Assembly (NCBI GenBank): GCA_950097015.1 | Contig: CATNEN010000002.1 | Coordinates: 4,340,001-4,404,000, forward strand | Length of the DNA: 64,000 bases | Reading direction: 5' to 3' | Source: Macrostomum hystrix | Taxonomy: Eukaryota > Animalia > Platyhelminthes | Shown here: one piece after another, positions 10,653 through 58,955 of the stretch | Numbering within the stretch: position 1 is the first letter of the stretch | How the letters are laid out: each line of letters begins with the position of its first letter | The notes under the pieces: model-generated | The model's database searches: none | Told to the model about the DNA's origin: nothing | What the model saw: the letters and a program-made list of their open reading frames with translations, nothing else | Position numbers and translations under genes: made by a program

Positions 10653-11189
10653 AACTACTAATACTACTACTACTGCTATACTACTACTGCTATACTACTA
10701 CTCAACTGCATAATGAATATTTTCCAGGTACTGTCCGCAAAGAACGCGCGATTTTATTGACGCAATCGAGTTCCTCTGGCCTATCACTGTACCTTTACGC
10801 AAATAACACGCCATTAATTGCGGAAATTAAATTGCTTCTATTAGCCTTAATTGTCTTGCGTAAACAATAGTTAGCTGAGGCGTCATAAAGATAAGTTTGT
10901 AATGTGAGTGCCGCCTTTGAAATTGCTGGAAAAGTTTTTCACGCCAAGCAACGGTGCTACTCACACAGTGGGAGCATTCAAGATATTCGGCTTCCTAGTC
11001 AAGTTACTCTACCCACTGCTGTGCCAGCAAACACTGCCTCACAGGCAGATAAGAACCTATCGAATTCAGATATTGCTTTTCGACCAGGGCTACCAACACT
11101 GAGCATTCGCCAAAAATATACTGTTGGTCTTAGCTAAATGGTTGCCAATTGTTAGGAAGAATATTTTACCGTAGCAGCACCTCTCCGCA

Positions 11190-14606: not shown

Positions 14607-14646
<40 letters not shown>

Positions 14647-17415: not shown

Positions 17416-18061
17416 AGAGGCTGTGCCTACATAGATTTTTCACGAATCTAAAAACAATCACCTGGCATATTTTTCTAAACAATTTTTCCCAATTCCTTTT
17501 TTAAGAGCAAACACGGGCAGCCCAGGTGGTGACGAAATCGCCTAAAATCAAAGATTAGCCAGGTAAGGGTAGCAGCGGCTCTAGCCTGTCTAATCCCTAA
17601 CCTCCCACGGTCGGGTGTCAAAAAGAATTTCCTCCCCACCCGCATGCCGTCACAGGTCTTTATAACGGAGGCGCAAAATGGCTTCGCTTCGAGCAGCTCG
17701 CGATGGAATGGAATTTGAGTGCTTTCCCAAGGCCTGTAGTAAAAATGGACCAATTGTTTGGCTTCTGATAGTTTATAAGCCTTTTCCCAGAGTCCATTTC
17801 TTGACAGGCACTGCCGCCTCAAGCCGTGTTAATTTTCCACCTGTCCTGTCGAACTGGCTTGCTCTAATCTAGGCAGATTTTTTCCCGAAAAAAATCTAGC
17901 TAATATAATGATTGTATTTTTTGTCGGATTTTAATAAATTTTAGCGCCTTCTGCGTTGACAACTCCCCACCTTCCTTTGCATTCGTTCCTTTCCGCCTTC
18001 TTTAGGACCTTTTCCCCCTGACCAGTCAGGTTTCTTTTTTATCACCCCATCATCTGCTTTC

Positions 18062-25225: not shown

Positions 25226-25568
25226 CAGGGGTCGGTGGCAGAGCGCTTTACGCGTTCGCCTCTCGCACCAAGGTCCTGAGCTCGATTCCGCTGCGAGGCC
25301 ACATTAATTTGGGGCGCAGCCGCGGAGAGAAGGCTTGGGAATTTACGCCCCTTGAGGGTCAACCTCCAAGGCACTGTAAACGCGTACACTGCCTGACGAT
25401 GAAAAAGTCAGGGCAGATGTACACACCTGTGTGAGCGCATGCCTGCGTACAGTATCTGCGTGTGTGCTCAGGAATTGGCAAAATTGCCTTCTACGAGCTG
25501 GCTGCGGGTCCAGAGTCACCAAATGATGTGCCATGGCCTGCAGCCCTCCTGTAATTATTATTATTATT
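25226..25568 (+). mobile_element. SINE family 1, full length, directly upstream of the GPCR start codon
   Basis: Head ggggtcggtggcagagcg...gagctcgattcc, full body and (ATT)n tail. Flanked by AGGTAGC (25219-25225) and AGGTGGC (25569-25575). Confidence 0.9.
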
Positions 25569-35875: not shown

Positions 35876-36140
35876 GCGTTTGCCTATTGCACCAAGGTCC
35901 CTGAGCTCAAGGTCTCGCGGTGCGGCAACAAGCGGCTTGTCGTGCAACTCACTCCTTTGAGTGCCAACCTTCAAGGCACAGTGAGAGTGCACACTGCCTG
36001 ACGATGTGAAAGTCAGGGTGGATGTACACACCTGTGTGAGCATGTGCTCAGGAGTCAGCGAAATGGGCAGAATTGCCTCCTCGCTGGCTGCTGGTCTAGT
36101 GTCGCTAAATGATGTGCCATTGACTGCAGACTAATTTTTA
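35876..36140 (+). mobile_element. SINE family 1, diverged copy
   Basis: gcaccaaggtccctgagctc...cactgcctgacgatgtgaaagtcagg...gcctcctcgctggctgctggtctag. Confidence 0.8.
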
Positions 36141-36279: not shown

Positions 36280-36555
36280 TTAGTCTGTCACAGTACCCAG
36301 CTTGGTAGAGAGAAACTCGGTGGCGCTAATCAGCTTCTTGAGGCTTTGGCTGCGGTTCTCGGCCTGCAGCTTGCGCAGATCGTCCAGATGCCGGGCGCAG
36401 AAGTCATGCAGGCTGGCCAGCTCGGAGGTCAGGCTGATGTTCTGGCAGTCCGGGCTGCTTGAAGAGGCCGGTGGCGCAGCCGAAGCGGCCGAGGAGGCGT
36501 CGCTGTTGCCGACGCTGGTGGAACGCGGTGAGACAGGTGGCCCGGGCGCTGCGGT
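36280..36555 (-). CDS. RASA1: RASA1 last exon (C-terminal helices, stop TAA)
   Basis: LTSELASLHDFCARHLDDLRKL...LKKLISATEFL resembles human LSRDLAALHEICVAHSDELRTL...LKKLLAITELL. Confidence 0.85.
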   Translation of the reverse strand, partial: TAAPGPPVSPRSTSVGNSDASSAASAAPPASSSSPDCQNISLTSELASLHDFCARHLDDLRKLQAENRSQSLKKLISATEFLSTKLGTVTD

Positions 36556-39500
36556 CTGGCAACGACAAATGAGTTATGAAAAATGACAAAACTGCTTAAT
36601 AGAATTAAATTAAACCCTATGTGGGGATAAGATCCTTAATCTTCGGATAAGAACCCCAACCTAGGGATTCTCATCCTGGGATTAGATCCCTAATCTGGGG
36701 ATAAGATCCTCAATCTGGGGATAAGATCCTCAACCTAGGGATTAGATCCTCAACCTGGGATAAGATCCTTAATCTGAGGGACAAGATGTTTAATCCGGGG
36801 ATAAGATCCACGATGTGAGGATAAGTGTTGTGTGCTAATTAAGCGATGCTTGTTAAGCATAGTAGGTGCTTTATTAATGGTTAGGTGGTGCAGCAAGTTT
36901 GTGTGACAAGTTCGACCCCTGGCAACGCTGGAGCTCCAGCGCTGTTATTCCACTTTGGTGGACATTTTGAGAGCTGCACATTCAACCTAAAGTGAGCTGC
37001 CTGAGTTCTTATAAGAGCACGAGTAAGTGACATTTCTACTTGACAATGCCACACACAGTCATCTGGAGTATGCCGTGCAAACTGCTATGAAAATGTTGTC
37101 GCCGTTAATATTTCGTAAACACCAACAACAATCCCCTTGTTGTACCGTTAATTCTTACTACGTTTTGAGCTCAAATAAATGCACTCTAAGTTTGCGTGCT
37201 GATAACGGTCATTGACGCACGCATTTTAGGCCGTTGATGCACGCTGTCTATGGTAAAATCTAGCATTGACGTGGCACGCTGAGACTGCCTATTGTTTGAT
37301 AATGTTACTTAGAGCTTAAGAACGAGGTTTTATAATTTCGTCAAGAGTATTTGGGGCATAGACAAAATCCTAATAAACAGCAGTGAAAGATTGAGGGCAA
37401 CAACCAATAAATAAGAATAATTTGAGTTGGGCTCATATCGCAACAATAAGATCATTAATCAGGGGATAGATACTAAAATTCTGTGGATAACCTAACGGAA
37501 ACATTGTGTCTTTGAGCACGACACCCATAGCTACAGCTCAGCCAGCTTTAAGGATGGGTAAAATGATCAGCTGGGTCACGAATTCGGGTGGGTGTCGCGG
37601 CCTACTACCCAGTCCATGGACTGAAAATCTGTACGCACCAGGCAGGCATTAAGCTTCAGGAACAAATCGGAATTGTCGCACACAAACGGCTTGACTCGTT
37701 CCATGCAGGCCTCGCGAAAGCTGCGCGACTGATTGGCGAACAGCTGCAGGGCCTTGGCGGCCAGCTGCAGCGAGCGCATGACCTGCGGACTGGCGTCCTG
37801 GTGCAGCTGCGGACCGAACACCAGCCGGAATTTCGTCGTCAAAGCCGGGCAGAACAGGCGCAGAAAGAAGAAGGCGGAGAGCACCCTGGCTGTGGCCTGG
37901 GGAAACCGCCGGGTGGTCTCCAACTGACAGGCAGAGCTCACGCGAAGCAGCACGGAGGGACAGCCGCAAGACTGGCAGTGCTGCAGGGTTCGCCGCATGC
38001 AGGTCAGCAGCAGCTCGTTCAATCTGGCCGCGTTTTTAGCGGCCGCTGCCTCCGCCTCCTCCTGGTCGTTGAGCTCGCCGCTGGAGTGCAACAGCCGGTC
38101 GACCTTCAGCTCCAGGTTGGCGTTTGCTCGCACGATCTGAATGTTGGTTTTTGAAATTTGATAATTTATTATGAGATACCACAGATAGTACCTCACAGAG
38201 ATCCTCATATGAAATTTTCGATTTCCAACATTTTGATATCCCAAAACAGCCTTGACTTTTCGATAGCTCAAACAACTCTAAAGCTAATACTAATTTTTGA
38301 ATACCTAAAAATCAATGCATATACCATATAAAAATTATCTTAAAATTAACCGCTGACTTCTACCTGAATGCCTGATACACGACTACCGACTCGCTATCCC
38401 AAAATATCCCAAACTACCGACTCGACATCCCAAAATATCCCAAACTACCGACTCGATATCCCAAAATATCCCAAACTACCGACTCGACATCCCAAAATAT
38501 CCCAAACTACCGACTCGATATTCAAACATCCTAAAAACATACTCGATATCCTAAAAAGATCCCTAACTACCTATTCAAAATCCCAAAAGATTCCTACTTA
38601 CCTACTCGATATCCCAAACAATTTTTTCGATGTCCAAAACTACCGACTCAATATCCCAAAATATCCCAAACTACCGACTCAATATCCCAAAATATCACAA
38701 ACTACCAACTCAATATCCCAAAATATCCCAAACTACCGACTTAATATCCCAAAATATCACAAACTACCGACTTAATATCCCAAAATATCACAAACTACCG
38801 ACTCAATATCCCAAAATATCACAAACTACCGACTCAATATCCCAAAATATCACAAACTACCGACTCGATATCCCAAAATATCACAAACTACCGACTTAAT
38901 ATCCCAAAATATCACAAACTACCGACTCAATATCCCAAAATATCACAAACTACCGACTCGATATCCCAAAATATCACAAACTACCGACTTAATATCCCAA
39001 AATATCACAAACTACCGACTCAATATCCCAAAATATCACAAACTACCGACTCAATATCCCAAAATATCACAAACTACCGACTCGATATCCCAAAATATCA
39101 CAAACTACCGACTCAATATCCCAAAATATCACAAACTACCGACTCGATATCCCAAAATATCACAAACTACCGACTCAATATCCCAAAATATCACAAACTA
39201 CCGACTCAATATCCCAAAATATCACAAACTACCGACTCAATATCCCAAAATATCACAAACTACCGACTCAATATCCCAAAATATCACAAACTACCGACTC
39301 GATATCCTAAAATATCCCAAAATATCCCAAACTACCGACTCAATATCCCAAAATATCACAAACTACCGACTCGATATCCTAAAATATCACAAACTACCGA
39401 CTCAACATCCCAAAATATCACAAACTACCGACTCAACATCCCAAAATATCACAAACTACCGACTCAATATCCCAAAATATCACAAACTACCGACTCGATA

Positions 39501-42500
39501 TCCTAAAATATCACAAACTACCGACTCGATATCCTAAAATATCACAAACTACCGACTCAATATCCCAAAATATCACAAACTACCGACTCAACATCCCAAA
39601 ATATCACAAACTACCGACTCAATATCCCAAAATATCACAAACTACCGACTCGATATCCTAAAATATCACAAACTACCGACTCGATATCCTAAAATATCAC
39701 AAACTACCGACTCGATATCCTAAAATATCACAAACTACCGACTCGATATCCTAAAATATCCCAAAATATCCCAAACTACCGACTCAATATCCCAAAATAT
39801 CACAAACTACCGACTCAACATCCCAAAATATCACAAACTACCGACTCAATATCCCAAAATATCACAAACTACCGACTCGATATCCTAAAATATCACAAAC
39901 TACCGACTCGATATCCTAAAATATCACAAACTACCGACTCAATATCCCAAAATATCACAAACTACCGACTCAATATCCCAAAATATCACAAACTACCGAC
40001 TCAATATTCAAACATTCCTAAAAACATACTCGATATCCTAAAAAGATCCCTAACTACCTATTCAAAATCCCAAAAGATTCCTACTTACCTACTCGATATC
40101 CCAAAGATCTCTAACTAAAAAACATCCCCAAAATTCCTAACTTCTCGGTGTCACGATATCCTAAAAGATCGAATTTCCAATATCCCCATCCCGACAGATC
40201 CCACCGAGTACTCTCAATGAGCCAGACAGCTCACCTCGTGCACCATGTCCCCAAGACACTGTCGCACAAACTGCATCGGCTCCTCCGTAACTAGGTAGAC
40301 CTCCAGAGCAGCGGTGCCGATCGTGGTAGTGCGGAAGAGCACCCCCTCCGAGTCGTTGTTAACGGCTTGAATATCCCCTAGCAACAAGCTGGTGAGCAGT
40401 TCGGCGCCCCGATTGTGATAGGCGAACACCTTGTAGATGGCCCTAGCCAGGTAAGTGAGGTCCTCGGATTGGCAAACTCCTCCCAGGGTTCGCAGACAGT
40501 CGATAGAATCCTCGGCGGCGAGAACAATGTCCCTAATTGGTACGTATTCTTTGCTAGCCAGCAAGACTGCGTGGCCAACGCGGCGAACCGAGAAGCAGAG
40601 CTGGACCTTGTCGGAGCTCGCAGGCAGCTTGTAGTCGGCGGTGCGGCCCAGTTGAAGATCCGATACGGGGACGTCCAGCTTGACGACCTTGGTACTTTTG
40701 GCAGCCTTCACCAGGCTGAGGTGCAGGCTGATGGTGTGCACACATTCCGGGAAGAAGTCACTGCGAAATTAAGAAAAATGCGAAGGCGATAGTTGGTAAG
40801 TAGTAGTGTAAGGACATAGCAAGCATTTTTGTATTCGAAGCAAAATAAAATTAAAATAATCCATTTGTTACGATTATAGGAACCCTTACATACTCGTCTT
40901 GTATTACGTATTTTTTCCAAGATATAAATTTGAAAAAATTCCTGTTTCGTTAAATTAGTTTTCAAAAATGATAACTTTCATAATTTTAGTTTCTAAGAAA
41001 GCTACTTTTTTTATTATAAATTTCCAAGAATGCCAACTTGTAAGAATTGATCATTTATCGAGTTTTTTTTCTAAGGATGCTAACTTTAAAGTTTTTTCTT
41101 AATAAAGGATGGTGGCAGCGTGTAGCTTTGGAAAATACAATGTCCAAGAGTGGCTGTTACTTAAAACTATTATTTTTAATTGCGGCATCTTTTTACCTTT
41201 CAATAAAAAATTGTAATCTCTAAGAACTTTCTATTTTGAGAAAAATGTTATTCAGAATTCACAGCTTCATTGAAACTAGATTCCGAACATTTTTTTTAAA
41301 CAAAAACACTTTTTAAAAATTCTAAATTTCCAAGAAAACATGTTTCTTGGAAAAAAACTTTTTATTTCCAATAATGTCTGCTTAGATTAGATTCTATTTA
41401 ATGTTCCTAAACTCTAAGTGTGCAGCACCGGATCCACAGTGACTCACCTGACTCAGTCTCATAACAGTACAACAACCAGTCCAAGAACTGGGTCAAAGCC
41501 TGCAAGACTTGCCTGCCAGATTGTTAATAGGAAATCAAACCCGGATTCAGAAAGCGGAGAATTAAACATAATGCTCACAATACGCGATTGAACAACAACA
41601 TGAAGGAAACAGCAAAATGTACTTGATGACCCAACAACCGCCCACGCTGTTTAGTTTAGTTATGACACCGAATGTGGACACCAAGCAGATAAAGTATTTT
41701 GTGCAGATGGCTATAAAAGTATTTCACCTTCTGTACTTTTAATTTAGCATCTAATAATGGGGTCACATCTGCAGCTAACGGCACAGCCGCCGCTATTCCA
41801 CAGCGCTTCTAAAGACTAGGCTGCGTTCAGCTGCTCAGTCCATGGACTGGCGGGCGTCTTAGAATTCTGAGAATTTCAGGTAGTATTAGTATGAGAGTAA
41901 TAGGAGAAGGGATAGAAAATAGGAGCAAGGGTAGAAGAAAGGAGTAGGGGGTAGAAAAAGGAGCAGGGTAGAAAATAGGAGCAGGGGTAGAAATAAGGAG
42001 CAGGGGGTAGAAAATAGGAGCAGGGGTAGAAAATAGGTGCAGGGGTAGAAAAAAGGAGCAGGGGTAGAAAAAAGGAGTAGGGGGTAGAAAATAGCAGCAG
42101 GGGTAGAAAATAGGTGCAGGGGTAGAAAAAAGGAGTAGGGGGTAGAAAAAAGGAGCAGGGGTAGAAAAAAGGAGTAGGGAGTAGAAAATAGGAGCAGGGG
42201 TAGAAAATAGGTGCAGGGGTAGAAAAAAGGAGTAGGGGGTAGAAAATAGGAGCAGGGGTAGAAAAAAAGGAGCAGGGGTAGAAAATTGTATCAGGGGGTA
42301 GAAAAACAGTACTAACTAATATTCTGCTAAATTAATTAGTAGATCATAAAAATGATTAAAAAACTTATTGAGCATTGGATTAGAAGCTTAGTTTAAAAAA
42401 TGCTTTGATACTTCGAGACTAAAATATATTATCGCAAGCTGACATTAAATTGGCCCCGCTAAAAAATCTAGACGGAAAACAACTGGCTTCAAAGCCATTG

Positions 42501-45500
42501 ATGAATTCTGAGATAGTGGCACTCACAAGTGGAACGGCTCGTCCCAGTTGATCATGAGTTCGTCGTCCTGCTCGCGACGATTGGACCGAGTCTTGGCCAC
42601 CATGACGCCATTGAAGTGCACAGTGACAAATGCTGTCTTACAGCTCACGCTGAGATTGCGAATACCCTTCACCGTCACCTGGAGATTGAGCACGGATTTG
42701 AGCAGGGTATTGATAACGAAGTATTTTAGGTAATAAGATTCTCAGGATAATGGGGTTTTTCAGATGTGGATACTTTAAATGTCGAAATTCAGGTATGGAT
42801 ACTTCAGGATAGTAGGATACTTCAGGCGAGGATACTTCAGGCGTGAATACTTCAGGATAGTAGGATACTTCAGGCCAGGATACTTCAGGTGTGGATACTA
42901 CAGGCGTGGATTCTTCAGGTGTGAATACTTCAGGATAGTAGGATACTTCAGGCCAGGATACTTCAGGTGTGGATACTTCAGGCGTGGATTCTTCAGGTGC
43001 GGATTCTTCAGGTGTGGATACTTCAGGCGTGGATTCTTCAGGCGTGGATTCTTCAGGTGTGGATACTTCAGGCGCGGATTCTTCAGGCGCGGATTCTTCA
43101 GGTGCGGATTCTTCAGGCGTGGATTCTTCAGGTGTGGATACTTCAGGCGTGGATACATCAGGCGTGGATACTTCAGGCGTGGATACTTCAGGCGTGGATA
43201 CATCAGGCGTGGATACATCAGGCGTGGATACTTCAGGCGTGGATACATCAGGCGTGGATACTTCAGGCGTGGATACATCAGGCGTGGATACTTCAGGCGT
43301 GGATACTTCAGGCGTGGATACTTCAGGCGTGGATACTTCAGACGTGGATTCTTCATGTTAACTCAGCAAGCCCAACATGCCTTTGATTCGATATCAGTCT
43401 AAATAAATAATATAAACATGCAGATAAAAATCGCAGGCACAAACCTCCAGCGTGCTGATGTGCCTGACGCTGCCTCCCCGATGGCTGGTGTGGTTGCAGA
43501 CTTTGCTGCATTTGCAAACCGGCTTCAATGCCTGCTGCCATTCGGCCAGCACCTGGGCGGAGTCGGCGGACAGGACGTAAACATCGGGTGGCGTCGATGT
43601 TGCTGAGGCCTCGTTGAAGATGACGAGTTGAAGGCACTGCGGCTTGTCGTAGGCACCCTGGCAGACGGGGTACAGGTGAGCGAACTCCAGTGCAATGAGA
43701 CCCTTCGGCTTGCCCCGCCTTCCAGACTCGGTGACTGGCGACAGCAGCACCTCGTAATTATCTCCGTCGCGGCGATGCAGCGTGCATCGCTGGCGCTTCC
43801 AGACTCGCTGGCGAATCCGGCGCTTGGGAAAGATGCAGTGCAGCTCCGAGGTCAGCTGGCCATCGCGGCCCTGCATAGACGACAGCCGATTCTCAGCGTA
43901 GATGTCGTCTCTGGGCAGATTGTTGTCCGCGAGATTCCTACGCAGTAGCGGCACCTTCAGAATAATAATAATTGTAGGAGGGCTGCGGGCAATGGCACAT
44001 CATTTGGTGACACCAGACCCGCAGCCAGCGAAGAGGCAGTTCGGCTCCATTTCGCTGACTCCTGAGCACACACGCACACAGATACCGTACGCAGGCATAC
44101 GCTCACACAGGTTTAACATCGTCAGGCAGTGTACACTCTGACTGTGCCTTGGAGGTTGGCCCTCAAGTGTGTAAATTGCACGACAAGCCCCCAAGCCTTC
44201 TCTCCGCGGCTGCGCCCCAAATGAATGTGTCCTAGCCGCGGAATCGAGCTAACGGACATTGGTGCGACAGGCGAAGGCGTTAGACCGCTCTGCCACCGAC
44301 CACCCAAAGCACCTTCAAAGTTACGGCATTCTCCTTGTCGATGAAGGTCTGCGAGTAGCGCCTGATGATTTCATCGATGGTGGCAAACTCGCGGCCGGAC
44401 AGTACAAAATGCCGACCGCCGGAGCCTTTTTGAATTTCGAATTTCCTGATCGCGCCGGTGCAATTCACGCACAGCACAGAGATATTTGGATCTCTGGCGC
44501 TTGGCCTGAGCAGATAGGTGCCTGTGCTCCGTGTCTTCAGCTCCTTCACTTGATCCTCCCAGTGGCTGGGGTGGTAGAACTTGCACGTGCTCAGCTCGGG
44601 ATCAAAATTGGGCTGCGGGAGATATGAAAAGCGAAATAAAAGTTTAGTTATACACTTATAATAATAATACTAATACTATTACAGGCCTGTTAAACTGCGT
44701 ACGGCTGTTCAGTCCATGGACTGGGGGGACGCCACACCCACCCTCAATTACCCCAGCTGATGCTGGTACCCAGTTGACAGCTGGGTGAACTGAAGCAATG
44801 CAGAGTTACGCGTCTTGCTAAAAGAACACAAATCGTTCCAGTGGAGTCGAAAATCGAACCCATGACCTTCAAGCCGAGAGTGCGATAATCTAAACACAAG
44901 CTACAACCTCTAGAATACACACTAGAGTTCACCAAGCTGTGTAACAATCCAAATGAATTCAATGAGCAGCGTAACTGCAGCTCAGAAGCTCTCGCTGAAA
45001 AAAAACTCTCATTTTATCATTCGCATTCTACAGCAGCTTTTGAGTACGACACACTGGTGTAAAAATGCTCAAAATAGTCTCAAAACACTGCTCAACCGAG
45101 ACGCTTCAGTCCCGCATTTGGGGTGGGTGTTACGGGGATTTGTCAGGGCATCGAACTGGGGAACCCTGAGCGCCAGAATTGTCTCCATTTAGCCTGGGAA
45201 TTTGTCCAAAACTATTCTGCAGTCTCACATACTTCTAATTAGTCTCACATTCGGCTCTATTGGTTGGGGTGGATGACTAGCGGCTAAACCCATTCCGAAA
45301 GCATAGACACATGAAAATCCCATTCCTACAGAAGACACATGAAAATCCCATTCCTACAGCATAGACACATGAAAATCCCATTCCTACAGCATAGACACAT
45401 GAAAATCCCATTCCTACAGCAGACACATAAAAATCCCATTCCTAAAGCACAGACACATGAAAATCACATTCCTACAGCATAGACACATAAAAATCCCATT

Positions 45501-48500
45501 CCTACAGCATAGACACATGAAAATCACATTCCTACAGAAGACACATGAAAATCCCATTCCTACAGCATAGACACATGAAAATCCCATTCCTAAAGCACAG
45601 ACACATGAAAATCCCATTCCTACAGCATAGACACATAAAAATCCCATTCCTACAGCATAGACACATGAAAATCACATTCCTACAGAAGACACATGAAAAT
45701 CCCATTCCTACAGCATAGACACATGAAAATCACATTCCTACAGAAGACACATGAAAATCCCATTCCTACAGCATAGACACATGAAAATCACATTCCTACA
45801 GCATAGACACATGAAAATCACATTCCTACAGCATAGACACATGAAAATCACATTCCTACAGCATAGACACATGAAAATCACATTCCTACAGCATAGACAC
45901 ATGAAAATCCCATTCCTACAGCATAGACACATGAAAATCACATTCCTACAGCATAGACACATGAAAATCCCATTCCTACAGCAGACAGATGAAAATCCCA
46001 TTCCTTAATTAGAGACACATAAAAATCCCATTCCTACAGCATAGACACATGAAAATCCCATTCCTACAGCATAGACACATGAAAATCCCATTCCTGCAGC
46101 ATAGACACATGAAAATCCCATTCCTGCAGCATAGACACATGAAAATCCCATTCCTTAATTAGAGACACATAAAAATCCCATTCCTACAGCAGACACATGA
46201 AAATCACATTCCTACAGCAGACACATGAAAATCCCATTCCTACAGCATAGACACATGAAAATCCCATTCCTACAGCAGACAGATGAAAATCCCATTCCTA
46301 CAGCAGACAGATGAAAATCCCATTCCTACAGCAGACACATGAAAATCCCATTCCTACAGCATAGACACATGAAAATCCCATTCCTACAGCATAGACACAT
46401 GAAAATCACATTCCTACAGCATAGACACATGAAAATCACATTCCTACAGCATAGACACATGAAAATCCCATTCCTACAGCATAGACACATGAAAATCCCA
46501 TTCCTACAGCATAGACACATGAAAATCCCATTCCTACAGCATAGACACATGAAAATCCCATTCCTACAGCAGACAGATGAAAATCCCATTCCTACAGCAG
46601 ACACATGAAAATCCCATTCCTACAGCATAGACACATGAAAATCACATTCCTAAAGCATAGACACATGAAAATCACATTCCTAAAGCATAGACACATGAAA
46701 ATCCCATTCCTACAGCATAGACACATGAAAATCCCATTCCTACAGCAGACAGATGAAAATCCCATTCCTTAATTAGAGACACATAAAAATCCTATTTCTA
46801 CAGCAGACACATAAAAATCCCATTCCTAAAGCACAGACACATTAAAAACTCATTAATAAAGGAAATATAAACAATAAGAAATAGAAACATTTTAACAAAT
46901 TCTTAATAAAATAAAAATGAAAGATTAAATAGCCAGTAAGATAAGCAAGCGATACCTGATGTCTGCAATTCTGTGAGCAGCATGCTCCTAACAAGCTTGC
47001 CAAACTCCAGTTAGTACGATGCATTTTTGACGCCAGCAAATGTTGCTTTGCAGATCTCAAATCACTCAAATCACTTTATTCTTTGTTGAGACTCTTTGCA
47101 GTCGCCCTATAAACTGTTGCTTCCAGGCGAAATAAATAACAAACAGGTTCACTCATCCATCCGCATTCCGCAACAACCCCCCCCACAGGCGAGCTACTCA
47201 ATGCGCGGACAGCCCACAAGCAGCGAATGGCGGTTTTTTGAGCAGTTCTTCAAAAGTCAGCGGCGAGTGAGCACAAACCGATGCTGCGCGCCTATACGCT
47301 GGGGTAGGCTGGGATTAGGAAGAAAACTGAGCCGGGCTGACTTATTTGGGCATATTTTTACTCCTACTGGTAGAATTTCCCGCCCCAAGTCACTTTTGAG
47401 CATAGGTAGGTTGTTTAAGAATATTTCTAAACAACTCGAGCCTAAATCAGTACGGTAGCAATAATCCAAATAATTGTTTCAGTTCCGATCCACGCGCTTC
47501 CGTCCTGCTTCAAACTGCAGTCTTTGTTTCCGCAATTTAGCAATAGTAACTACCGATAAAATCGCACATCCTAAAGATCGAAATTCACGAGATAATCCCA
47601 ATTAACCGTAATCTGAAAATGTCGAATTCTAGAGAAACGTGACCTGGAAACAAGTAATTTTTAGTTTAGGTAATTATTGATCCTTTTTCAATATAATAGA
47701 TAATCCTACAGATCCCTTTTTACAAGAAAATAGATAATCCTACAGATCCCCTTTCCAAGAAAATAGTTAGAAAATAGATCCTTTTTCAATAAAATAGATA
47801 ATCCTACAGATCCCCTTTCCAAGAAAATAGATAATCCTACCGATACCATTACAAGAAAATAGATAATCCTACAGATCCCCTTTCCAAGAAAATAGTTAGA
47901 AAATAGATCCTTTTTAAATAAAATAGATAATCCTACAGATCCCTTTTCCAATAAAATAGATAATCCTACAGATCCCCTTTCCAAGAAAATAGATAATCCT
48001 ACAGATCTCCTTTCCAAGAAAACATGTAATCATACAGATCACCTTTCCAAGAAAAAAGATAATCCTACAGATCCCCCTTACAGGAAAATAGATAATCCTA
48101 CAGATCCCTTTCCAAGAAAATAGATAATCCTACAGATCCCTTTCCAAGAAAACAGATAATCCTACAAATCCCTTTCTAAGAAAATAGATAATCCTACAGA
48201 TCACCTTTCCAAGAAAATAGATAATCCTACAGATCCCTTTCCAAGAAAATAGATAATCCTACAGATCCTTTTTTAATAAAATAGATAATCCTACAGATCC
48301 TTTTTCAATAAAATAGATAATCCTACAGATCCTTTTTCAATAAAATAGATAATCCTACAGATCCCCTTTCCAAGAAAATAGATAATCCTACAGATCTCCT
48401 TTCCAAGAAAACATGTAATCATACAGATCACCTTTCCAAGAAAAAAGATAATCCTACAGATCCCCCTTACAGGAAAATAGATAATCCTACAGATCCCTTT

Positions 48501-51500
48501 CCAAGAAAATAGATAATCCTACAGATCCCTTTCCAAGAAAACAGATAATCCTACAAATCCCTTTCTAAGAAAATAGATAATCCTACAGATCACCTTTCCA
48601 AGAAAATAGATAATCCTACAGATCCCTTTCCAAGAAAATAGATAATCCTACAGATCCTTTTTTAATAAAATAGATAATCCTACAGATCCTTTTTCAATAA
48701 AATAGATAATCCTACAGATCCTTTTTCAATAAAATAGATAATCCTACAGATCCCCTTTCCAAGAAAATAGATAATCCTACAGATCTCCTTTCCAAGAAAA
48801 CATGTAATCATACAGATCACCTTTCCAAGAAAAAAGATAATCCTACAGATCCCCCTTACAGGAAAATAGATAATCCTACAGATCCCTTTCCAAGAAAATA
48901 GATAATCCTACAGATCCCTTTCCAAGAAAATAGATAATCCTACAAATCCCTTTCTAAGAAAATAGATAATCCTACAGATCACCTTTCCAAGAAAATAGAT
49001 AATCCTACAGATCCCTTTCCAAGAAAATAGATAATCCTACAGATCCTTTTCTAAGAAAATAGATAATCCTACAGATCCCTTTCCAAGAAAATAGATAATC
49101 CTACAGATCCTTTTCTAAGAAAATAGATAATCCTACAGATCCCTTTCTAAGAAAATAGATAATCCTACAGATCCCTTTCCAAGAAAATAGATAATCCTAC
49201 AGATCCCTTTCTAAGAAAATAGATAATCCTACAGATCCCTTTCCAAGAAAATAGATAATCCTACAGATCCCTTTCTAAGAAAATAGATAATCCTACAGAT
49301 CCCTTTCCAAGAAAATAGATAATCCTACAGATCCCTTTCTAAGAAAATAGATAATCCTACAAATCCCTTTCCAAGAAAATAGATTATCCTACAGATCCCT
49401 TTCTAAGAAAATAGATAATCCTACAGATCCCTTTCCAAAAAGCGAGATTCTAAAGATCATTTACAAGTAAACTCAAAGTTCTAAAAATCCTTTCCAAGGC
49501 AGATACAAATCTCAAATCTTTAAAAAACTCTTCTGAAGGATCCCTTTCTTAGAAATCCTACTTGTCAGAATTCGACCTTTGAACAGTCTCAGGAGAATTC
49601 ATTTTTTGTTTAAGGAACGAGTGAATTTTTTACAATCTAAATTACTACTCAGCAAGTAGTACCGGTGTTGCTTTTACAGGAATCAAATAAAAAAAAAAGT
49701 TTTTTTAAACAAAAGATTTGATTATGTCTGGAATTCTTAAACTAATGACATAAATGGTTTTAGGGGATATAGAATAGTTAAATATATTTTTTGCCTTGCT
49801 ATTTGACTGTAATAAGAAAATGTGAACAGTGAACAAGTGAAGCTACAGCATGACCTTTGTTTATTTGGCCTGTGAAAATATGGAACCGCTAATTCTAGGA
49901 TATGTACAATGCAAGAATTGTCGATATTATCATTAAGTCACGTTTCCAGTTGCATTCTAATACGGTATAATAAATATAGGCCAAAGAAATTCCGTCCAAG
50001 TTCAACTTTTAAAGGCCTGCTGTGCCTACTAGCTCAGCTTGACAATCAATAACAAACAGAAATGCTGCACATTTAGTTCCCTGTCTTCACTGCCACTGTT
50101 TGGGCAGGGTGGGTAGGGTGGTTTGGGAAGAGACTATTAGTGAATTAAATGAGACACGAAATAAATAATACGAAAGAATTGAAAATGGAGATGAGAGAGG
50201 AGAGAAGAGCGAAAAATAGGGGAGGGAAGAGAAGAGAAGTGGAGCGGAAAGGAGATAAAGGCAAAAGAGAGAAGGGGAGAGGAGAGAAGGGGAGAGGAGA
50301 GAAAGTGAGAGGAGAGAAGGGGAGAGAAGAGAAGGGGGGAGGAGAGAAGGGGAGAGAAGAGAAGGGGGGAGGAGAGAAGGGGAGAGGAGAGATGGGTAGA
50401 GGAGAGAAGGGGAGAGGAGAGAAGGGGAGAGGAGAGAAGGGGAGAGGATAGAAGGGGAGAGGAGAGAAGGGGAGAGGAGAGAAGGGGAGAGGAGAGATGG
50501 GTAGAGGAGAGAAGGGGAGAGGAGAGAAAGTGAGAGGAGAGAAGGGGAGAGGAGAGAAGGGGAGAGGAGAGAAGGGGAGAGGAGAGAAAGTGAGAGGAGA
50601 GAAGGGGAGAGAAGAGAAGGGGAGAGGAGAGAAGGGGAGAGAAGAGATGGGGAGAGGAGAGAAGGGGAGAGGAGAGAAGGGGAGAGGAGAGAAGGGGAGA
50701 GGAGAGAAGGGGAGAGGAGAGAAGGGGAGAGGAGAGAAGGGGAGAGGAGAGAAGGGGAGAGAAGAGATGGGTAGAGGAGAGAAGGGGAGAGGAGAGAAGG
50801 GGAGAGGAGAGAAGAGGAGAGGAGAGAAGGGGAGAGGAGAGAAGGGGAGAGGAGAGAAGGGGAGAGGAGAGAAGGGGAGAGGAGAGAAGGGGAGAGGAGA
50901 GATGGGTAGAGGAGAGAAGGGGAGAGGAGAGAAGGGGAGAGGAGAGAAGGGGAGAGGAGAGAAGGGGAGAGGAGAGAAGGGGTGAGGAGGTAGCGGAGGA
51001 CAGAGCTACCTCAGTGCAGCCAGTAACCCATCTGTGTAATATCAAAGAAGACACAAATATCCCAAGGTCAAGGCAGTCAATCTAACAATGTAGGGCGCAG
51101 TTCAACGAAGTTAATTACCTAAAGACAGGATGCTACATAGGTGTGTACATCAAAATTCCAAAGAATAGAAGAAAATGAAGAAGCCCATTAACTTGTAGAA
51201 GCAATTCTATTTTTCCATGCAACCAAATTGGCTAGTGACAAGTGTTTACATAGATAAGAATCTTGAAAGGCATTTGTGAGCGTTGAACACTTGAAATTCT
51301 AGCAGTTCTGCCCCTATTCAAGTATCGAAAATCTGATAATAACTCACCACAATTCTAGAACGCTTTCCGCTTTACAATTTAAGTATTTGATTTGGCAAAA
51401 TTTGGCATAATTAAATCGATGTTAAAGTGCATTCTATCTAGGATCATGCAGTTTGTTAGTCATCCGTTTTTTATAAATTTGCATTTTTATGACGCAAATT

Positions 51501-54500
51501 TCAATTCATTAACCTAAAATATCACTAAGCTGTGTCGCAAACGGTTTCGCTACATATCGGTGAAGGTTTGTCAGTTTGTTTGAATCCTATGCATAATATA
51601 GCGATGCCTTTTAAACGACTCGGCAATATTATCGAATTCCGAGATTAGAGGGCGAATCCAATAGACGACAGTGGGTCGGATTGGAGTCCAGATACTGGAA
51701 CGATGAGACAGGGGACAGACGAGACGGGGGAGAGATAAGACGGGAGAGATAAGACAGGGGAGAGATGAGACACTGGAGAGATAAGACACGAGAGAGATGA
51801 GACAAGGGAGAAATTAGACACAGGAGAGATGCAACGGGGGAGAGATTAAACAGGGGAGAGATGAGACAAGGGAGAGATGAGACACGGGAGATATGAGACA
51901 CGGGAGAGATGAGACAGGGGAGAGATGAGACACGGGAGAGATGAGACAGGGGATAGATGCGAGGGGAGAGATAAGGCGGGAGAGATTAGACAGGAGAGAT
52001 GAGATACGAGAGAGATGAGACACGGGAGAGGTGAGACAGCAGAGATTAGACGGGGAGAGATTAGATAGGAGAGAGATGAGACAAGAGAGCGATGAGACAC
52101 GGGAGAGATGAGACACGGGAGAGATGAGACGGAGAGATAAGACAGGGGAGAGATGAGACACGGGAGAGATGAGACAAGAGAGCGATGAGACAAGGGAGAG
52201 ATTAGACACAGAGAGATGAGACGGGGAGAAATGAGACACGGGAGAGATGAGACGGGAGAGATGAGACAGGGGAGAGATGAGACAGGGGAGAAATGAGACA
52301 GGGGAGAAATGAGACAGGGGAGAGATGAGACAGGGGAGAAATGAGACAGGGGAGAGATAAGACAGGGGAGAAATGAGACAGGGGAGAGATAAGACAGGGG
52401 AGAGATAAGGCGGGAGATTAGAAAGGGTTAGGTTGTCTTTACGAAAATAGGTGTCAATAGTGCAGTAAATCAGTTGAACAGAACTTACCAAGAAGAGCAT
52501 GAAATAGTTCAGAAAAAAATTCAGCTTTAAAAAATTAAAAACTTTGCCAGTTTTGTTCTCTAAGAAAGCCCGGGCCGTCCGACCCTGGATGACTTTTGCC
52601 GCTCAGGAATATAGAATCCCAGACTAGGCTCGGAGTCAAGAAATTGTTCCGCAAGTGGAAAACCTGTCAGCCAACCAGCGATGAGGCGGGATATAAAAAA
52701 TGCAACATCCCCACCTCCGCCAGCCTTTTACTAAATTGTAAAGTTACTTATTCAGCTTATGTTTGCAATATTAAAAAGATAAATGATTTCTAAGGCCAAG
52801 CCAACTTAATAAATAAGTAGCAGTCTAAAGCCTTTACCTCTCGCACCAAGGTCCCTGAGCTCGATTCCGCGGCGAGGCAACATTTATTTGAGGCGAAGGC
52901 CACGGAGAGAAGGCTTTTGGGCAACTTACGCCCTCGAGGGCCAACCTCCAAGGCTTACACTGTGTAAGCCTACACTGCCTGACAATGAGAAAGTCAGGTC
53001 AGGTGTACACACCTGTGTGAGCGTGTGTGCTCAGGAGTCAGCGAAATGGGCAGAATTGCTGCCATCCTCGCTGGCTGCGGGTCTAGCAGCCCTCCTGCAA
53101 TCATTATTAAGCTAGCCTATTAGAAGACAAAAAATATGTGGCGGCAAGGAAAAAAACTAAAATGTCGGCACCTGCTATAACAAAAATAGATTAATCAAAT
53201 AAGGTCAAACAGGTCACCACATTTGACCTACCCACTCCCTGATCAAGCATTGAAGTCAGAATAAATATTGACTTCGATAAGTTTGGGGCTAAAGCTAGTT
53301 TCTTTAATTAAGCCCAGCAGATCAAGAAGACCCAGACAGAAAGTATCATGCAAAGTATCATTCCACATTCTTTGTAGTTTTTTCCCCAGGCAATCAAAGA
53401 CAAGCCGACAAACAAAAAAGAGAACAGTTGTAACAAAAAACAGTCTCGAAACAATGAGTTGAAGGGAATGAGGGCTTGAAGCGACTGCAAGGCACACGAA
53501 CCTGATTTATTGCGTCTGACAAATGATTCAGACTTATGGTGTCTATGCATTTAGGTGCAAAAGCACTGCACTAAATAAAAAGCAAGTTGTCAACAATTTT
53601 AATTCATTCTCATGCTCATTTGTGCCACTGGCAATAGTGCGTGCATACCTAGTACAGACATAACTAATTCTAGATTTACTCTGTTAAAGCATTTACCTTC
53701 TGGGCAAAGAATATTCAAAGAATAAATTTCAGGGAAAACAGATTTCATGGAAAGTGGAATCTTCAGGGAAATGAGATTTCATGGAAAAGTGGAATCATCA
53801 GGGAAATGAGATTTCATAGACAGTGGAATCTTCAGGGAAATGAGATTTCATGGAAAGTGGAATCTTCAGGGAAATGAGATTTCATAGACAGTGGAATCTT
53901 CAGGGAAATGAGATTTCATAGACAGTGGAATCTTCAGGGAAATGAGATTTCATGGAAAGTGGAATCTTCAGGGAAATGAGATTTCATGGAAAGTGGAATC
54001 TTCAGGGAAATGAGATTTCATGGAAAGTGGAATCATCAGGGAAATGAGATTTCATAGACAGTGGAATCTTCAGGGAAATGAGATTTCATTGAAAGAGGAA
54101 TCTTCAGGGAAAAGAGATTCATAGACAGTGGAATCTTCAGGGAAATGAGATTTCGTGGAAAGAGGAATCTTCAGGGAAAAAAGATTCATAGACAGTGGAA
54201 TCTTCAGGGAAAAGAGATTCATAGACAGTGGAATCTTCAGGGAAAAGAGATTTCGTGGAAAGAGGAATCTTAAGGGAAAAGAGATTCATAGACAGAGGAA
54301 TCTTCAGGGAAAAAAGATTCATAGACAGTGGAATCTTCAGGGAAAAGAGATTCATAGACAGTGGAATCTTCAGGGAAATGAGATTTCGTGGAAAGTGGAA
54401 TCCTCAGGGAAATGAGATTTCGTGGAAAGTGGAATCTTCAGGGAAATGATATTTCCCCACCCCTGTTCCCTCGTCTCCCCATTCCTGTTCCCCCGTCTCC

Positions 54501-57054
54501 CCATTCCTCTTCCCGTCTCCCCATTCCTCTTCCCGTCTCCCTATCCCTATTAAAAAGTATTTTAAAAGCGTTAAAAATTATTTTTGTTTGTTAAAACTCA
54601 GCTTCTTTGGGACGCTAAAACTTTTGTTTGATATTTTAGTCAAGTAAAATATCATCGCAACTCACCAAGTCCTCGACAATGCCGCGGTAGACCCTGCCGC
54701 TCTGCGCACTATTAACGTGAGTCGCCCACATCCAGCCCTCTTGGTTAGTGTGCTCCACGTAGCAGACGTCACCGGCAACCAGCGACAGCTCGTCAGTGCC
54801 GGGCGATTTCGTGTAGCTCATCATGGCCATCACGCAGCGCTTGACGGGAAGCCGGTGCGTCGGCGGTATGGGGTGCTCCAACCTGGCATTCGGGTAGATT
54901 TCCACCTGCGACAGGAGAGTTGGGTGCGGCTTGAGGACTTCCCCGAATGGGCAGGCAAATGGGATAAGGGTATTTGGGACGAGGGTTGGGAAGACGGGAG
55001 TAGGGATGGGGAGACAGGGGAAGATGGATGGGGAGACAGGAAGATGGATGGGGAGACAGGGGAAGATGGATGGGGAGACAGGGTAGGAAAGATGGGGAGA
55101 CAGCGGAAGAGGGATAGGGAGACGGGAAGAGGAATGGGGAGACGGGGGAACAGGAATGGGGAGACGAGGGAAGAGGGGTGGGGAGGCGGGGGAACAGGAA
55201 TGGGGAGACGGGGAAACAGGAATGGGGAGACGAGGGAAGAGGGGTGGGGAGACGGGGGAAGAGGAGTGGGGAGACGGGGGAAGAGGAGTGGGGAGACGGG
55301 GGAAGAGGAGTGGGGGGACGGGGGAAGAGGAATGGGGAGACGGGGGAACAGGAATGGGGAGACGAGGGAAGAGGGGTGGGGAGACGGGGAAAGAGGAGTG
55401 GGGAGACGGGGGGAGAGGAGTGGGGAGACGGTGGAAGAGGAGTGGGGAGACGGGGGAAGAGGGGTGGGGAGACGGAGGAAGAGGTGTGGGGAGACGGGGG
55501 AAGAGGGGTGGGGAGACGGAGGAAGAGGTGTGGGGAGACAGGGGAAGAAAATGGGGAGACGGGGGAAGAGGGATGGAGGGAGGGGTAGGAACAGGGGCAA
55601 ACGGTTTAAGACTGGAGAATTAGTAAGTAGAGGAGCCTGATGACGAATATTTTAAGTCCTGACCTGTGTGTAATAGGTGACAAGTTCAGCCAGTGAATGA
55701 AACACCAGGCCTCCAATAATCCACAGGTCGTAGGATTGTCGAATCCTGTTAAAAACGTAAAGACAGTCAGAAAAAAATAAGTAGCCACCAAAAAATAATC
55801 GGTTATTAACTTACTGTGCCAATGTTTAGAACAAAAGATATTGGTGTCAAAAATAGATATCAATAAACTATTGAAAAGTCAACACTACACAAAAGCTAGA
55901 ATTAGTTATTCATTACCTGAAATGAACTTTCTGTGAAATTCCATCTTTTTTTGTATGCAAAGATATGCAGAACTGCTCATCTGGCTTCACTGACGATGGT
56001 CCAATGATTCTCTCTCGAACTAAATAATAGTTGTCTGGCTCATATTCATTTAGGATCTCGTCCGCTTTGATCTGGTCCATTTGGCCATGAAAGAAACTGT
56101 CAATGCAAGTAGATGATTTTACAGGTTTTATATTGACAGGTGGCAAGTGTGCTAAGATATAGGATTGTAAAAATTGAATTTTGTTTTGTAATTAAGAATA
56201 TACTGTATGAGATTCTCCACTCCCTTTAAAAATGTAAAAATTATATTTCTCCTATATTGAAGAATGCATTAAATGGAATATTGTTCTATCTTCAGAAATA
56301 TAAAATAGGAGTCATACATTCAGTTGAATTGACATTTGAGCTAATATATTATTGGTTTTGTAACACAATCACTTCAGTACAACTTTTAAAGAGAAATGAT
56401 TGTGTTTGAAACTACAACCAAAAAAGCATAAGTTTAGTTTAAATACTTTTAGCAACCAACATTATAATATCAGTTTTGGAAGGCAATAATTTCTATTCAA
56501 CTTTTAAAGAGAAATGATTGTGTTTGAAACTACAACCAAAAAATAATAAGTTTAGTTTAAATACTCTTAGCAACCAACATTATAATATCAGTTTTGGAAG
56601 GCAATAATTTCTATTCAACTTTTAAAGAGAAATGATTGTGACCTGAAACTAAAAACAAAAAATGTTTAAAATTAATTTCCTAAACTTTCACTAAACAATT
56701 GGCAATGACTTGCTCCAATTCTTAATATATTAAGTACTGCACTTTTTGTTGACAATAATTCGCATGTATCTATGTATATATAGCATTAATATCATTATAA
56801 TATATATGATAATGATGTATGTGATCTACGTACATCATATGATGTATGATGTTTATATATATATATATAATGTTCAAAACCGTTTTTTTATATTATAATT
56901 TTTTGATAAGTAATAAGTCAAATAGACTGCATTTTTTACAATGAGAACAGTAGAAAAATGCTGCTGATTTAAAGGTTTATAAATAGGCTTACTCTTCAAA
57001 TTTAACAGAAATTCCATTCCCAGTGGTGTCCTCTTCTTGTTCGTCGTCAGCCAT
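36280..57054 (-). CDS. RASA1: p120 RasGAP (SH2-SH3-SH2-PH-C2-RasGAP), 10 exons: 57054-56993, 56096-55917, 55745-55664, 54905-54666, 44612-44313, 43954-43445, 42678-42527, 40760-40235, 38136-37639, 36555-36280; 941 aa
   Basis: All junctions GT-AG with consistent phases, total 2826 nt. Domain order and motifs match human RASA1: FFHG/YLVRE, YTKSPGTDELS..GWMW, YLLRPS, KPKGLI, FFFLRLFCPAL, C-terminal ELASLHDFC...LKKL. Exon 1 is the least certain. Confidence 0.9.
36622..36822. repeat. Minisatellite, about 20 bp unit (ggataagatcctcaatctgg)
   Basis: Read directly. Confidence 0.8.
37500..37630 (+). mobile_element. SINE family 2 (CORE-like), 3' part
   Basis: gtgtctttgagcacgacac...cagctggg...gggtgggtgtcg...cccagtccatggactgaa, collinear with the 44700-44905 copy. 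Confidence 0.55.
37639..38136 (-). CDS. RASA1: RASA1 exon 9, RasGAP catalytic core
   Basis: FFFLRLFCPAL signature and KALQLFAN. Confidence 0.92.
38385..40110. repeat. Minisatellite, 31 bp unit (atcccaaaatatcacaaactaccgactcaat), in RASA1 intron 8
   Basis: Read directly; core bracketed by a ~98-bp direct repeat. Confidence 0.95.
40235..40760 (-). CDS. RASA1: RASA1 exon 8, C2 C-terminus and start of the GAP domain
   Basis: LFRTTTIGTAALEVYL corresponds to the FRxxT arginine-finger region. Confidence 0.88.
41905..42305. repeat. Minisatellite, about 20 bp unit (gtagaaaataggagcagggg)
   Basis: Read directly. Confidence 0.88.
42527..42678 (-). CDS. RASA1: RASA1 exon 7, C2 domain
   Basis: VTVHFNGVMVAKTR...WDEPFHF; ctccag| acceptor and gtgagt donor. 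Confidence 0.85.
42765..43352. repeat. Minisatellite, 15 bp unit (ggatacttcaggcgt)
   Basis: Read directly. Confidence 0.92.
43445..43954 (-). CDS. RASA1: RASA1 exon 6, PH domain
   Basis: WKRQRC...KPKGLIALEFAHLYPV...KPQCLQLV...AEWQQAL. Confidence 0.88.
43960..44308 (-). mobile_element. SINE family 1, full length, constituting RASA1 intron 5
   Basis: Head gggtggtcggtggcagagcgg...gctcgattcc, body and (ATT)n tail. 9-bp TSD gcaccttca at 43951-43959 and 44309-44317. Confidence 0.93.
44313..44612 (-). CDS. RASA1: RASA1 exon 5, C-terminal SH2 domain
   Basis: KFYHP...GTYLLRPSARD...IRKFEI...HFVLSGREFATIDEIIRRY. Confidence 0.9.
44700..44905 (-). mobile_element. SINE family 2 (tRNA head plus CORE-like domain)
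   Basis: Minus strand: gggttcgatt B-box, gtgttcttttagcaagacgcgtaactctgcattgcttcagttcacccagctgtcaactgggtacc, and 3' cagtccatggactg. Confidence 0.7.
45293..46840. repeat. Minisatellite, 28-30 bp unit (cattcctacagcatagacacatgaaaatcc)
   Basis: Read directly. Confidence 0.95.
47697..49438. repeat. Minisatellite, about 32 bp unit (gataatcctacagatccctttccaagaaaata), with a higher-order block repeated three times
   Basis: The variant aaacatgtaatcatacagatcacc recurs at about 48020, 48410 and 48800. Confidence 0.93.
50270..50985. repeat. Polypurine minisatellite, 15 bp unit (ggagaggagagaagg)
   Basis: Read directly. Confidence 0.95.
51705..52415. repeat. Purine-rich gagagatgagac-type minisatellite (same family as 16443-17415)
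   Basis: Read directly. Confidence 0.9.
52830..53112 (+). mobile_element. SINE family 1 copy, 5'-eroded, antisense in RASA1 intron 4
   Basis: cctctcgcaccaaggtccctgagctcgattccgcggcgagg... through gcagccctcctgcaatcattatt. Confidence 0.85.
53730..54448. repeat. Minisatellite, 32-34 bp unit (cttcagggaaatgagatttcatagacagtggaat)
   Basis: Read directly. Confidence 0.93.
54666..54905 (-). CDS. RASA1: RASA1 exon 4, SH3 domain (phase 0-0, 240 nt)
   Basis: YTKSPGTDELSLVAGD...EGWMWAT...GRVYRGIVEDL versus human YTKVPDTDEISFLKGD...DGWMWVT...GLIVEDLVE. Confidence 0.92.
55005..55590. repeat. G/A-rich minisatellite (about 21-22 bp, ggggagacgggggaagaggagt) in RASA1 intron 3, with an inverted copy at 54455-54548
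   Basis: Read directly. Confidence 0.88.
55664..56096 (-). CDS. RASA1: RASA1 exons 2-3, N-terminal SH2 domain (56096-55917 and 55745-55664)
   Basis: FFHGQMDQIKADEIL...YLVRE...VHFR|IRQSYDLWIIGGLVFHSLAELVTYY. Confidence 0.85.
56380..56650. repeat. About 118-bp tandem duplication (2 copies plus a partial)
   Basis: caacttttaaagagaaatgattgtg recurs at about 56380, 56497 and 56617. Confidence 0.85.
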
Positions 57055-58589: not shown

Positions 58590-58955
58590 AGGGTGAATGG
58601 CATAACGGTTATCACGTCTCTCTCCCACCAAAGTCCGTGAGCTCTATTCCGCGGTGAGGCCACATAAAATTGGCAGCCGCGGAGAGAAGGCAATTGAAGG
58701 CTTGTCGTGCCATTTGCGCGTTGAGGGCCAACCTCTAAGGCACAGTGAAATGTACACTGCCTGACGATGAAAAATTCAGGGCAGATGTACAAACTTGTGT
58801 GAGCGTGTGCCAGCTGCGTGCGGTATCTGTGTGCGTGTGTGCTCAGGAGTCTGTGAAATGGGCAGAATTGCCTCATCGCTGGCTGCGGGTCTAGTGTCAC
58901 CAAGTGATGTGCCTGCATCCCTCCTGCAATTATCATTACTATTATTATTATTATG
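58590..58955 (+). mobile_element. SINE family 1, diverged full-length copy with ATT tail
   Basis: Collinear with the other copies over about 350 bp. Confidence 0.85.

Follow-up and report, generated by a model that had tools for sequence, protein, structure and literature searches.

We analysed a 64,000-nucleotide (nt) window of the genome of the flatworm Macrostomum hystrix (GCA_950097015.1, contig CATNEN010000002.1, positions 4,340,001 to 4,404,000; the window is the whole stretch of DNA that was analysed, and coordinates below are counted within it), and found that a coding region of a Ras GTPase-activating protein (RasGAP) gene is interrupted by a short interspersed nuclear element (SINE) that is removed from the mature mRNA as an intron. 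The gene occupies 36283..57054 on the minus strand. It was delimited with Pfam and by tblastn of the Macrostomum lignano protein P0001 (945 amino acids; source name Ras GTPase-activating protein; SH2, SH3, SH2, PH and RasGAP domains) against the window, which recovered all P0001 exons in order from 57054 to 36283 on the minus strand. Pfam searches of the exon translations recognized SH2, SH3, PH and RasGAP domains, several of them below the gathering score, as single exons were scored; the first SH2 exon and the C2-like exon gave no Pfam hit, yet both align to P0001. The predicted domain order, SH2-SH3-SH2-PH-C2-RasGAP, is that of p120 RasGAP, and we refer to the gene as RASA1-like. No second copy, empty allele or paralogue of it was found in the assembly, which comprises 220,453,370 bases in 42 contigs and was also the target of the genome searches described below.

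Two exons of this gene flank the SINE. The upstream exon encodes the second SH2 domain (44313..44612, minus strand; 300 nt, phase 0 at both ends); it follows the acceptor ...tctcccgcag|CCC, corresponds to P0001 residues 188-288, and is supported by Pfam (SH2, E 5.8e-9) and by cDNA. The downstream exon encodes a linker and the PH domain (43445..43954, minus strand; 510 nt); it ends in ...CTGGAG|gtttgt, is supported by Pfam (PH, E 4.3e-5) and by cDNA, and is 73% identical to P0001 residues 290-459. When the PH exon was compared with 1.8 billion representative sequences, four matches were returned, of which one, P0001, is an orthologue.

Between the two exons lies a GT-AG intron of 358 nt in phase 0 (43955..44312, minus strand), and its borders fall within a 9-nt direct repeat, TGAAG|GTGC (TGAAGGTGC; bars mark splice points), which was read from the sequence on the minus strand at 44309..44317 (5' target-site duplication copy) and at 43951..43959 (3' copy). 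The last five bases of the upstream exon, TGAAG, are the exonic half of the 5' copy, which supplies the donor AAG|gtgc; the acceptor ...ttctgaag|G comes from the 3' copy. On the minus strand, the last codons of the SH2 exon are ...GCC GTA ACT TTG AAG, up to 44313, after which come gtgc, ttt and gggtggtcggtggcagagcgg; the element runs out in ...attattattatt (in a fuller reading, ...caattattattatt), then c and tgaag to 43955, after which the open frame of the PH exon begins with GTG CCG CTA CTG. The interval thereby opens with 4 nt from the 5' copy of the repeat and TTT, continues with a 345-nt SINE copy in gene-sense orientation (43961..44305, minus strand; delimited from the other genome copies and an alignment of 22 of them), and closes with a single C and 5 nt from the 3' copy of the repeat, so that 4 nt (TTT and C) are neither SINE nor repeat. 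The SINE copy carries a box A-like motif (TGGCAGAGCGG, 44295-44285), a box B-like motif (GCTCGATTCCG, 44249-44239) and an (ATT)4 tail (43972-43961), all on the minus strand, the tail providing a U-rich tract ahead of the acceptor. A 9-nt direct repeat would occur at any single specified pair of positions with a chance of 4^-9 (~4e-6), which rises to ~4e-4 when about 100 combinations of offsets are allowed. An unspliced transcript would read through into ...AVTLKVLWVVGGRAV (...KVLWVVGGRAV) and then meet a stop (open reading frame (ORF) 44280..44549); splicing at the duplicated AG|GT restores ...AVTLK VPLL....

Splicing and gain of the intron

To place the interval in transcripts, we used Logan contigs of four sequencing runs (X2, X6, X7 and X9) on window positions 43360-45280; these are assembled sequences, not raw reads, in which a minor retained isoform is invisible. 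One contig each of X2, X6 and X7 (1798, 1230 and 1106 nt, respectively) follows the genome over 43443-43950 and then over 44309-44613, skipping 358 nt, with 0 mismatches to the assembly and 100% identity over 813 nt; the three runs come from two studies. The sequence from X9 is a 187-nt exon piece that carries no information on the junction. The joint in the contigs can be slid over 9 nt, and among these positions the cut at +4 is the only canonical one, with CT..AC on the plus strand corresponding to GT..AG on the gene strand.

The three contigs stop matching at 43443 and 44613, which are the neighbouring donor CTGGAG|gtttgt and acceptor ctcccgcag|CCC; the differences of one or two bases from the predicted exon borders are bases that coincide with the next exon. 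The placed stretch extended by 83 nt and 667 nt into the flanking introns, yet the contigs run on elsewhere for hundreds of bases. Since they leave the genome at both neighbouring exon borders, they are spliced cDNA. A 31-mer assembly graph cannot jump a 9-nt repeat, and the depth over the SINE stems from other copies that are 90-95% alike. The 358-nt SINE interval is a U2-type GT-AG intron that is exactly removed from the mature mRNA, and it is constitutive-looking.

Two other interpretations of the runs were set aside. In the run search, X1 contained a near-complete share of the sequence words (0.91) and seven runs, X2-X8, contained about 0.70 of them (0.69-0.70). This share of 0.69-0.70 had been considered as a sign of an empty DNA allele or of about 1% divergence, which was rejected because the contigs of X2, X6 and X7 show the spliced form. 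For the same reason, the guessed label "DNA?" of X6 and X7 was discarded, as their contigs at the locus are spliced and behave as cDNA. X6 carries a different organism code; the X6 and X7 contigs are 100% identical to the assembly and behave as RNA of the same species.

Comparison with M. lignano indicates how the intron arose. At the orthologous locus (L033, NIVC01001511.1), residues 189-459 lie in one continuous exon, from 31460 to ~32273, and the DNA is continuous across the insertion site (...AAGTTGCGCGAGCCGCTGCTC...; ...GTGAAGTTGCGCGAGCCGCTGCTCAGACGG...). This exon covers the same 270 residues uninterrupted, and all other exon borders are common to both genes; an ancestral exon of 810 nt has been split into 300 and 510 nt in the lineage of the window only. 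The uninterrupted exon together with the shared borders shows that the intron was gained in the M. hystrix lineage, after its split from M. lignano. The repeat leads to a similar conclusion independently of the outgroup: because it covers exonic bases on both sides (TGAAG upstream and GTGC downstream), the target was continuous coding sequence at the time of insertion, which leaves no room for an older intron. Homologue searches with M. lignano residues 190-460, and with a WS/DGAT-like exon that is described below, returned nothing beyond P0001.

These observations bear on a first-pass annotation of the same DNA, which had been made from the letters alone and had proposed that the intron consists of a SINE plus its target-site duplication. 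The anatomy of the interval agrees with this proposal, and the statements on exon borders, repeat, 358-nt interval and read-through stop were all correct on re-reading. Its suggested check of transcripts across the junction came out positive, since the predicted splice at AG|GT is found as an exact join in the cDNA contigs of X2, X6 and X7, and the intron-less site that it hoped to find in a congener is present in the uninterrupted exon of M. lignano. Its worry that this might be a non-expressed pseudo-allele is answered as well, because the RasGAP gene is single copy and expressed.

The SINE family and its copies in exons

With the 358-nt interval as query, a first look at the assembly gave 3919 candidates, and the 40 of them that were scored are 84-90% identical and span the query from ~5-17 to ~352; an exact 17-nt head motif occurs in 1025 copies genome-wide. 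In an alignment of 22 copies with their flanks, the other copies share the same start and end points, each with its own target-site duplication. The common head across these copies is GGGGGGTCGGTGGCAGAGCGGT..., the common 3' end is ...CCCTCCTGCAATTATTATT followed by a variable (ATT)n tail, and directly behind the tail stands a copy-specific direct repeat of the 5' flank, which is 11-14 nt long in the 22-copy sample and at most 16 nt elsewhere. By inspection, the family has a box A-like TGGCAGAGCGG and a box B-like G(T/C)TCGATTCC that are ~46 nt apart. The element is thus short (345 nt), dispersed in many copies, and terminated by a simple-repeat tail and a duplication of variable length, as expected of a SINE, and a tail with an adjoining duplication is what retroposons that integrate through target-primed reverse transcription typically show.

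When aligned with a majority consensus built from its 22 nearest relatives, the copy in the RasGAP gene shows 21 differences over 332 aligned positions (6.3%) as well as three indels, and the sample median of divergence from the consensus is 6.2%; the closest relative of the copy among the 40 scored of the 3919 candidates is 90% identical. Judged by this divergence, the insertion is of ordinary age for the family, old rather than recent, so that the "recent" gain of the first-pass annotation is not borne out. One of the differences from the consensus is at position 43975 on the minus strand, where the family-consensus G is replaced by A (cctGcaatt to cctAcaatt); the position precedes the new acceptor by 20 nt, a typical branch-point distance; that this was a post-insertion change improving splicing is pure speculation.

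We then considered whether other members of the family are placed in the same manner. Among the 1025 exact-head copies, AGGT is found within 9 nt upstream of the head in 31 and ACCT in 24, compared with ~40 expected by chance, and a preference of the SINE for AGGT proto-splice targets was rejected on these counts. Each AGGT/ACCT-flanked copy was excised in silico at the duplicated AG|GT, and an ORF through the joint was sought. Long, Pfam-supported through-ORFs were obtained at 2 of 54 loci, the RasGAP locus and L070, and the idea that most of the flanked copies are introns was therefore also rejected; L049, L051/L052, L053, L054, L073 and L082 were borderline. About 2 of the 1025 exact-head copies (~0.2%) split a coding exon.

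At the RasGAP locus, where the copy is in sense and the duplication is TGAAG|GTGC (9 nt), removal of the 358-nt intron opens 119 codons upstream and 185 codons downstream, with SH2 and PH domains. At L070:1503-1870 (G000:C3, ~15,384,890-15,385,260), an antisense copy is flanked by a perfect 16-nt duplication, CTCGCCAG|GTACTGTT, and excision of a putative 368-nt intron would yield a through-ORF of 77 + 338 codons in a WS/DGAT-like exon (WS_DGAT_cat, E 2e-6). A third case, L064:3089-3476 (G000:C2, ~4,837,588-4,837,975; 433 kb beyond the window), is a diverged SINE copy, also antisense, with the duplication AG|GTAT; excision of a putative 388-nt intron would give a through-ORF of 351 + 147 codons in a Mab-21/cGLR-like exon (Mab-21_C, E 1.5e-6). 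At the L064 acceptor, the pyrimidine tract is formed by the complementary strand of the SINE head (caattcaccccctag|G). In both antisense cases the tract is complementary to the G-rich head of the SINE; at the sense copy, it corresponds to the (ATT)n tail. With their clean anatomy, L070 and L064 are candidates for further SINE-made introns, and the family appears to have split at least two other coding exons in the M. hystrix genome.

In all this the family shows no specialization for genes or splicing of the kind that marks introners: few copies split exons, there is no excess of AGGT/ACCT near the head, and both splice dinucleotides come from the target, not from the SINE. With ~0.2% of its copies splitting exons, the family fails the introner specialization and works like an introner only on occasion. 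We tentatively suggest, at somewhat less than even chances, that it is a low-rate retroposon "introner" in an animal, which may have added at least a dozen introns to conserved Macrostomum genes. Its duplications of 9-16 nt, and two ends that both give pyrimidine-rich tracts in either orientation, might be what makes this possible, and it is conceivable, with similar reserve, that any exonic insertion whose duplication holds AG|GT is spliced out seamlessly and survives.

Other members and relatives of the family were also observed. About eight family copies lie within the 64-kb window, including copies or fragments with 76-86% identity at 25230-25565 (+), 14635-14996 (-), 10315-10654 (-), 11744-12018 (+), 58620-58938 (+), 52819-53084 (+) and 35934-36129 (+). 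In M. lignano, an intron of the orthologue contains, at L033:23753-23925, sequence that is 70% identical to the SINE over its central 150 nt, and an older related SINE core may be common to the genus Macrostomum. A different SINE-like element is located at 44660-44960 (minus strand), in the intron directly upstream of the SH2 exon; a box B-like GGTTCGATTTTCGA was recognized in it, and ~45 nt lie between the end of its (ATT)n tail and the acceptor. The summed contig depth over this element and over the main SINE is in the thousands in RNA-like runs, which indicates that SINE-bearing RNAs are abundant. The RasGAP introns and the neighbouring DNA also carry long tandem arrays, at 42788-43355, 45289-46854, 41899-42305 and ~17977-20300, with units of 15 nt (x37), 30/206 nt (over 1.5 kb), 19 nt (x21) and 18 nt (~130 copies with extreme GC skew), respectively.

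Origin of the SINE intron

Taken together, it is very probable that a SINE inserted in a coding exon, that its 9-nt duplication supplies both splice sites, and that it is removed exactly as an intron. A non-autonomous retroposon of ~345 nt would have inserted in sense into the 810-nt RasGAP coding exon after the split from M. lignano, and would have duplicated the 9-nt target TGAAGGTGC, presumably through target-primed reverse transcription. This target would have carried a proto-splice site, AAG|GTG, such that the upstream repeat copy could become the donor (AAG|gtgc) and the downstream copy the acceptor (...attattattattctgaag|G), with the U-rich SINE tail presumably acting as the pyrimidine tract and the spliceosome cutting at the two AG|GT points and removing the 358 nt in between. 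Since one repeat copy leaves with the element, the mRNA would regain its pre-insertion sequence to the base, in phase 0, and an insertion with this outcome would be effectively neutral and could be fixed.

Several observations weigh against this interpretation. The duplication is 9 nt long, compared with the usual 11-16 nt in the family, and TTT separates its 5' copy from the SINE head. The donor gtgctt is weaker than most donors of the RasGAP gene, and the acceptor is AAG, not YAG; a donor ctg|gtgcgt is also present elsewhere in the same gene. The gain is called against one outgroup genome, that of M. lignano. The contigs leave a retained-intron minority isoform possible, and it is formally possible that an empty allele segregates among the RNA donors. 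A tRNA origin of the SINE, which the box motifs would suggest, is not confirmed by the programs used: ARAGORN found no tRNA in the window or in 24 other SINE copies, and on 43800-44500 no RNA family, tRNA included, was matched in Rfam at E<=1.

If an empty allele were segregating, the joined RNA form could come from this SINE-free allele and not from splicing, and the SINE allele would be disrupted, perhaps deleterious or recessive. A spliced SINE allele and an uninterrupted allele would indeed give contigs that are alike, and no contig bridging the exon-SINE border is among the pieces listed. Against this, the divergence of the copy from its consensus and from its closest scored relative points to an old copy that is unlikely to be segregating still; its ordinary age argues for fixation and against RNA from a segregating empty allele. 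The M. hystrix assembly was made from the inbred line SR1 (F ~0.998), and RNA-Seq was made in the same study (PMC10468722), so that, given a highly inbred line as the likely source and RNA of one project with the assembly, the RNA donors are unlikely to carry an empty allele. The complete identity of the X2, X6 and X7 contigs to the assembly over 813 nt and the lack of a second copy in the assembly also argue against it, and L070 and L064 have the same AG|GT duplication anatomy, which is expected if insertions are tolerated through splicing. Overall, an empty allele as the source of the joined RNA is very unlikely, and the SINE insertion is probably fixed in the species.

A different route to an intron that is still SINE-made would be the capture of the SINE as filler during double-strand-break repair at a short AGGT repeat. 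The 9-nt repeat, which is below the usual 11-16 nt, and the extra bases beside the SINE, TTT before its head and C behind its tail, could be taken in this sense, and intron gain with short direct repeats has been ascribed to break repair (Li et al. 2009, as cited in PMC11092651). However, the copy is full length, from a normal head to a normal (ATT)n tail, and the repeat stands right after the tail, as in ordinary copies. A few untemplated 5' bases are, moreover, common at retroposon junctions, and we regard capture during repair as highly improbable. Replacement of an older intron, either by a SINE that landed inside it with the rest deleted or through loss of the intron from M. lignano, has a negligible probability: M. 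lignano is the single outgroup in the comparison, but the repeat straddles both exon-intron borders and so marks the target as continuous coding sequence, just 4 nt of the interval lie outside the SINE and repeat, and every other exon border is shared with M. lignano. Insertion of the SINE with duplication of its target thus accounts best for the locus.

Relation to known systems

How animals acquire new introns is poorly documented, and most of the cases that are well understood involve DNA-transposon introners of protists and fungi; in the literature searched, no account of intron gain for Macrostomum was found. The RasGAP locus shows every step of such a gain, namely the retroposon, the intact duplication, the intron-less orthologue, and the base-perfect removal in transcripts. 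Together, the exon-splitting copies form a small natural series on insertions that are "born spliced", covering orientation, tail, duplication length and proto-splice-site context, and SINE introns are markers for dating gains across Macrostomum species. If the reading of the family as a low-rate introner is true, a dated and mechanistically transparent series of intron gains would become available in a laboratory-tractable metazoan.

Introners were reportedly described by Huff et al. in 2016 as intron-generating transposons. They are transposable elements that are spliced upon insertion into an exon, with splice sites co-opted from the target-site duplication (PMC9860276, PMC12130899), and ~5% of the classified introner families derive from non-long-terminal-repeat (non-LTR) retrotransposons (PMC12130899). 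In introner families, a considerable part of the copies are introns; the copies often arose in recent, near-identical bursts, and the families are mostly DNA transposons of protists and fungi. In contrast, the SINE in the RasGAP gene is an ordinary genome-wide SINE, of which ~2/1025 copies split exons and in which AGGT is not enriched at the targets.

A single-locus precedent is the rice catalase gene CatA, in which a SINE gave rise to an intron (Iwamoto et al. 1998, as cited in PMC2394776). By that account, the rice case is like ours in that a SINE in coding sequence became a spliceosomal intron and the gain at a single locus is seen against intron-less homologues. It differs in being from a plant, whereas the RasGAP case is in a flatworm, with both splice sites coming from the duplication and the exact removal seen in transcript contigs. 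Alu intronization has been described for four cases in human 3' untranslated region (UTR) exons, as alternative introns of the retention type (Sela et al. 2007, PMC2394776), and here too SINE insertion into an exon yields a new intron. The Alu splice sites, however, lie inside the Alu or arose by later mutation, whereas in the RasGAP case the insertion is in conserved coding sequence, the frame is exactly restored, and both sites come from the duplication.

In Daphnia, recently gained introns stand between short direct repeats with AGGT (Li et al. 2009, cited in PMC11092651). As far as this citation describes them, they resemble the RasGAP intron in that a short direct repeat with AG|GT bounds the new intron and splicing restores the original sequence. 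The Daphnia introns are described there as unknown or unique sequence and ascribed to break repair, whereas the insert in the RasGAP gene can be identified as a multi-copy SINE that bears a retroposon tail.

The first-pass annotation had held that intron gain of this kind is known mainly from DNA-transposon introners, and that clean retroposon cases are rare, which was somewhat overstated in view of rice CatA, Alu intronization (PMC2394776), the non-LTR introners (PMC12130899), and the candidates L070 and L064. The mechanism is already known, and no new mechanism is revealed by the RasGAP locus. What is new here is a well-documented animal instance in a conserved gene, in which both splice sites come from the duplication, together with evidence of the same SINE family making exon-splitting insertions repeatedly.

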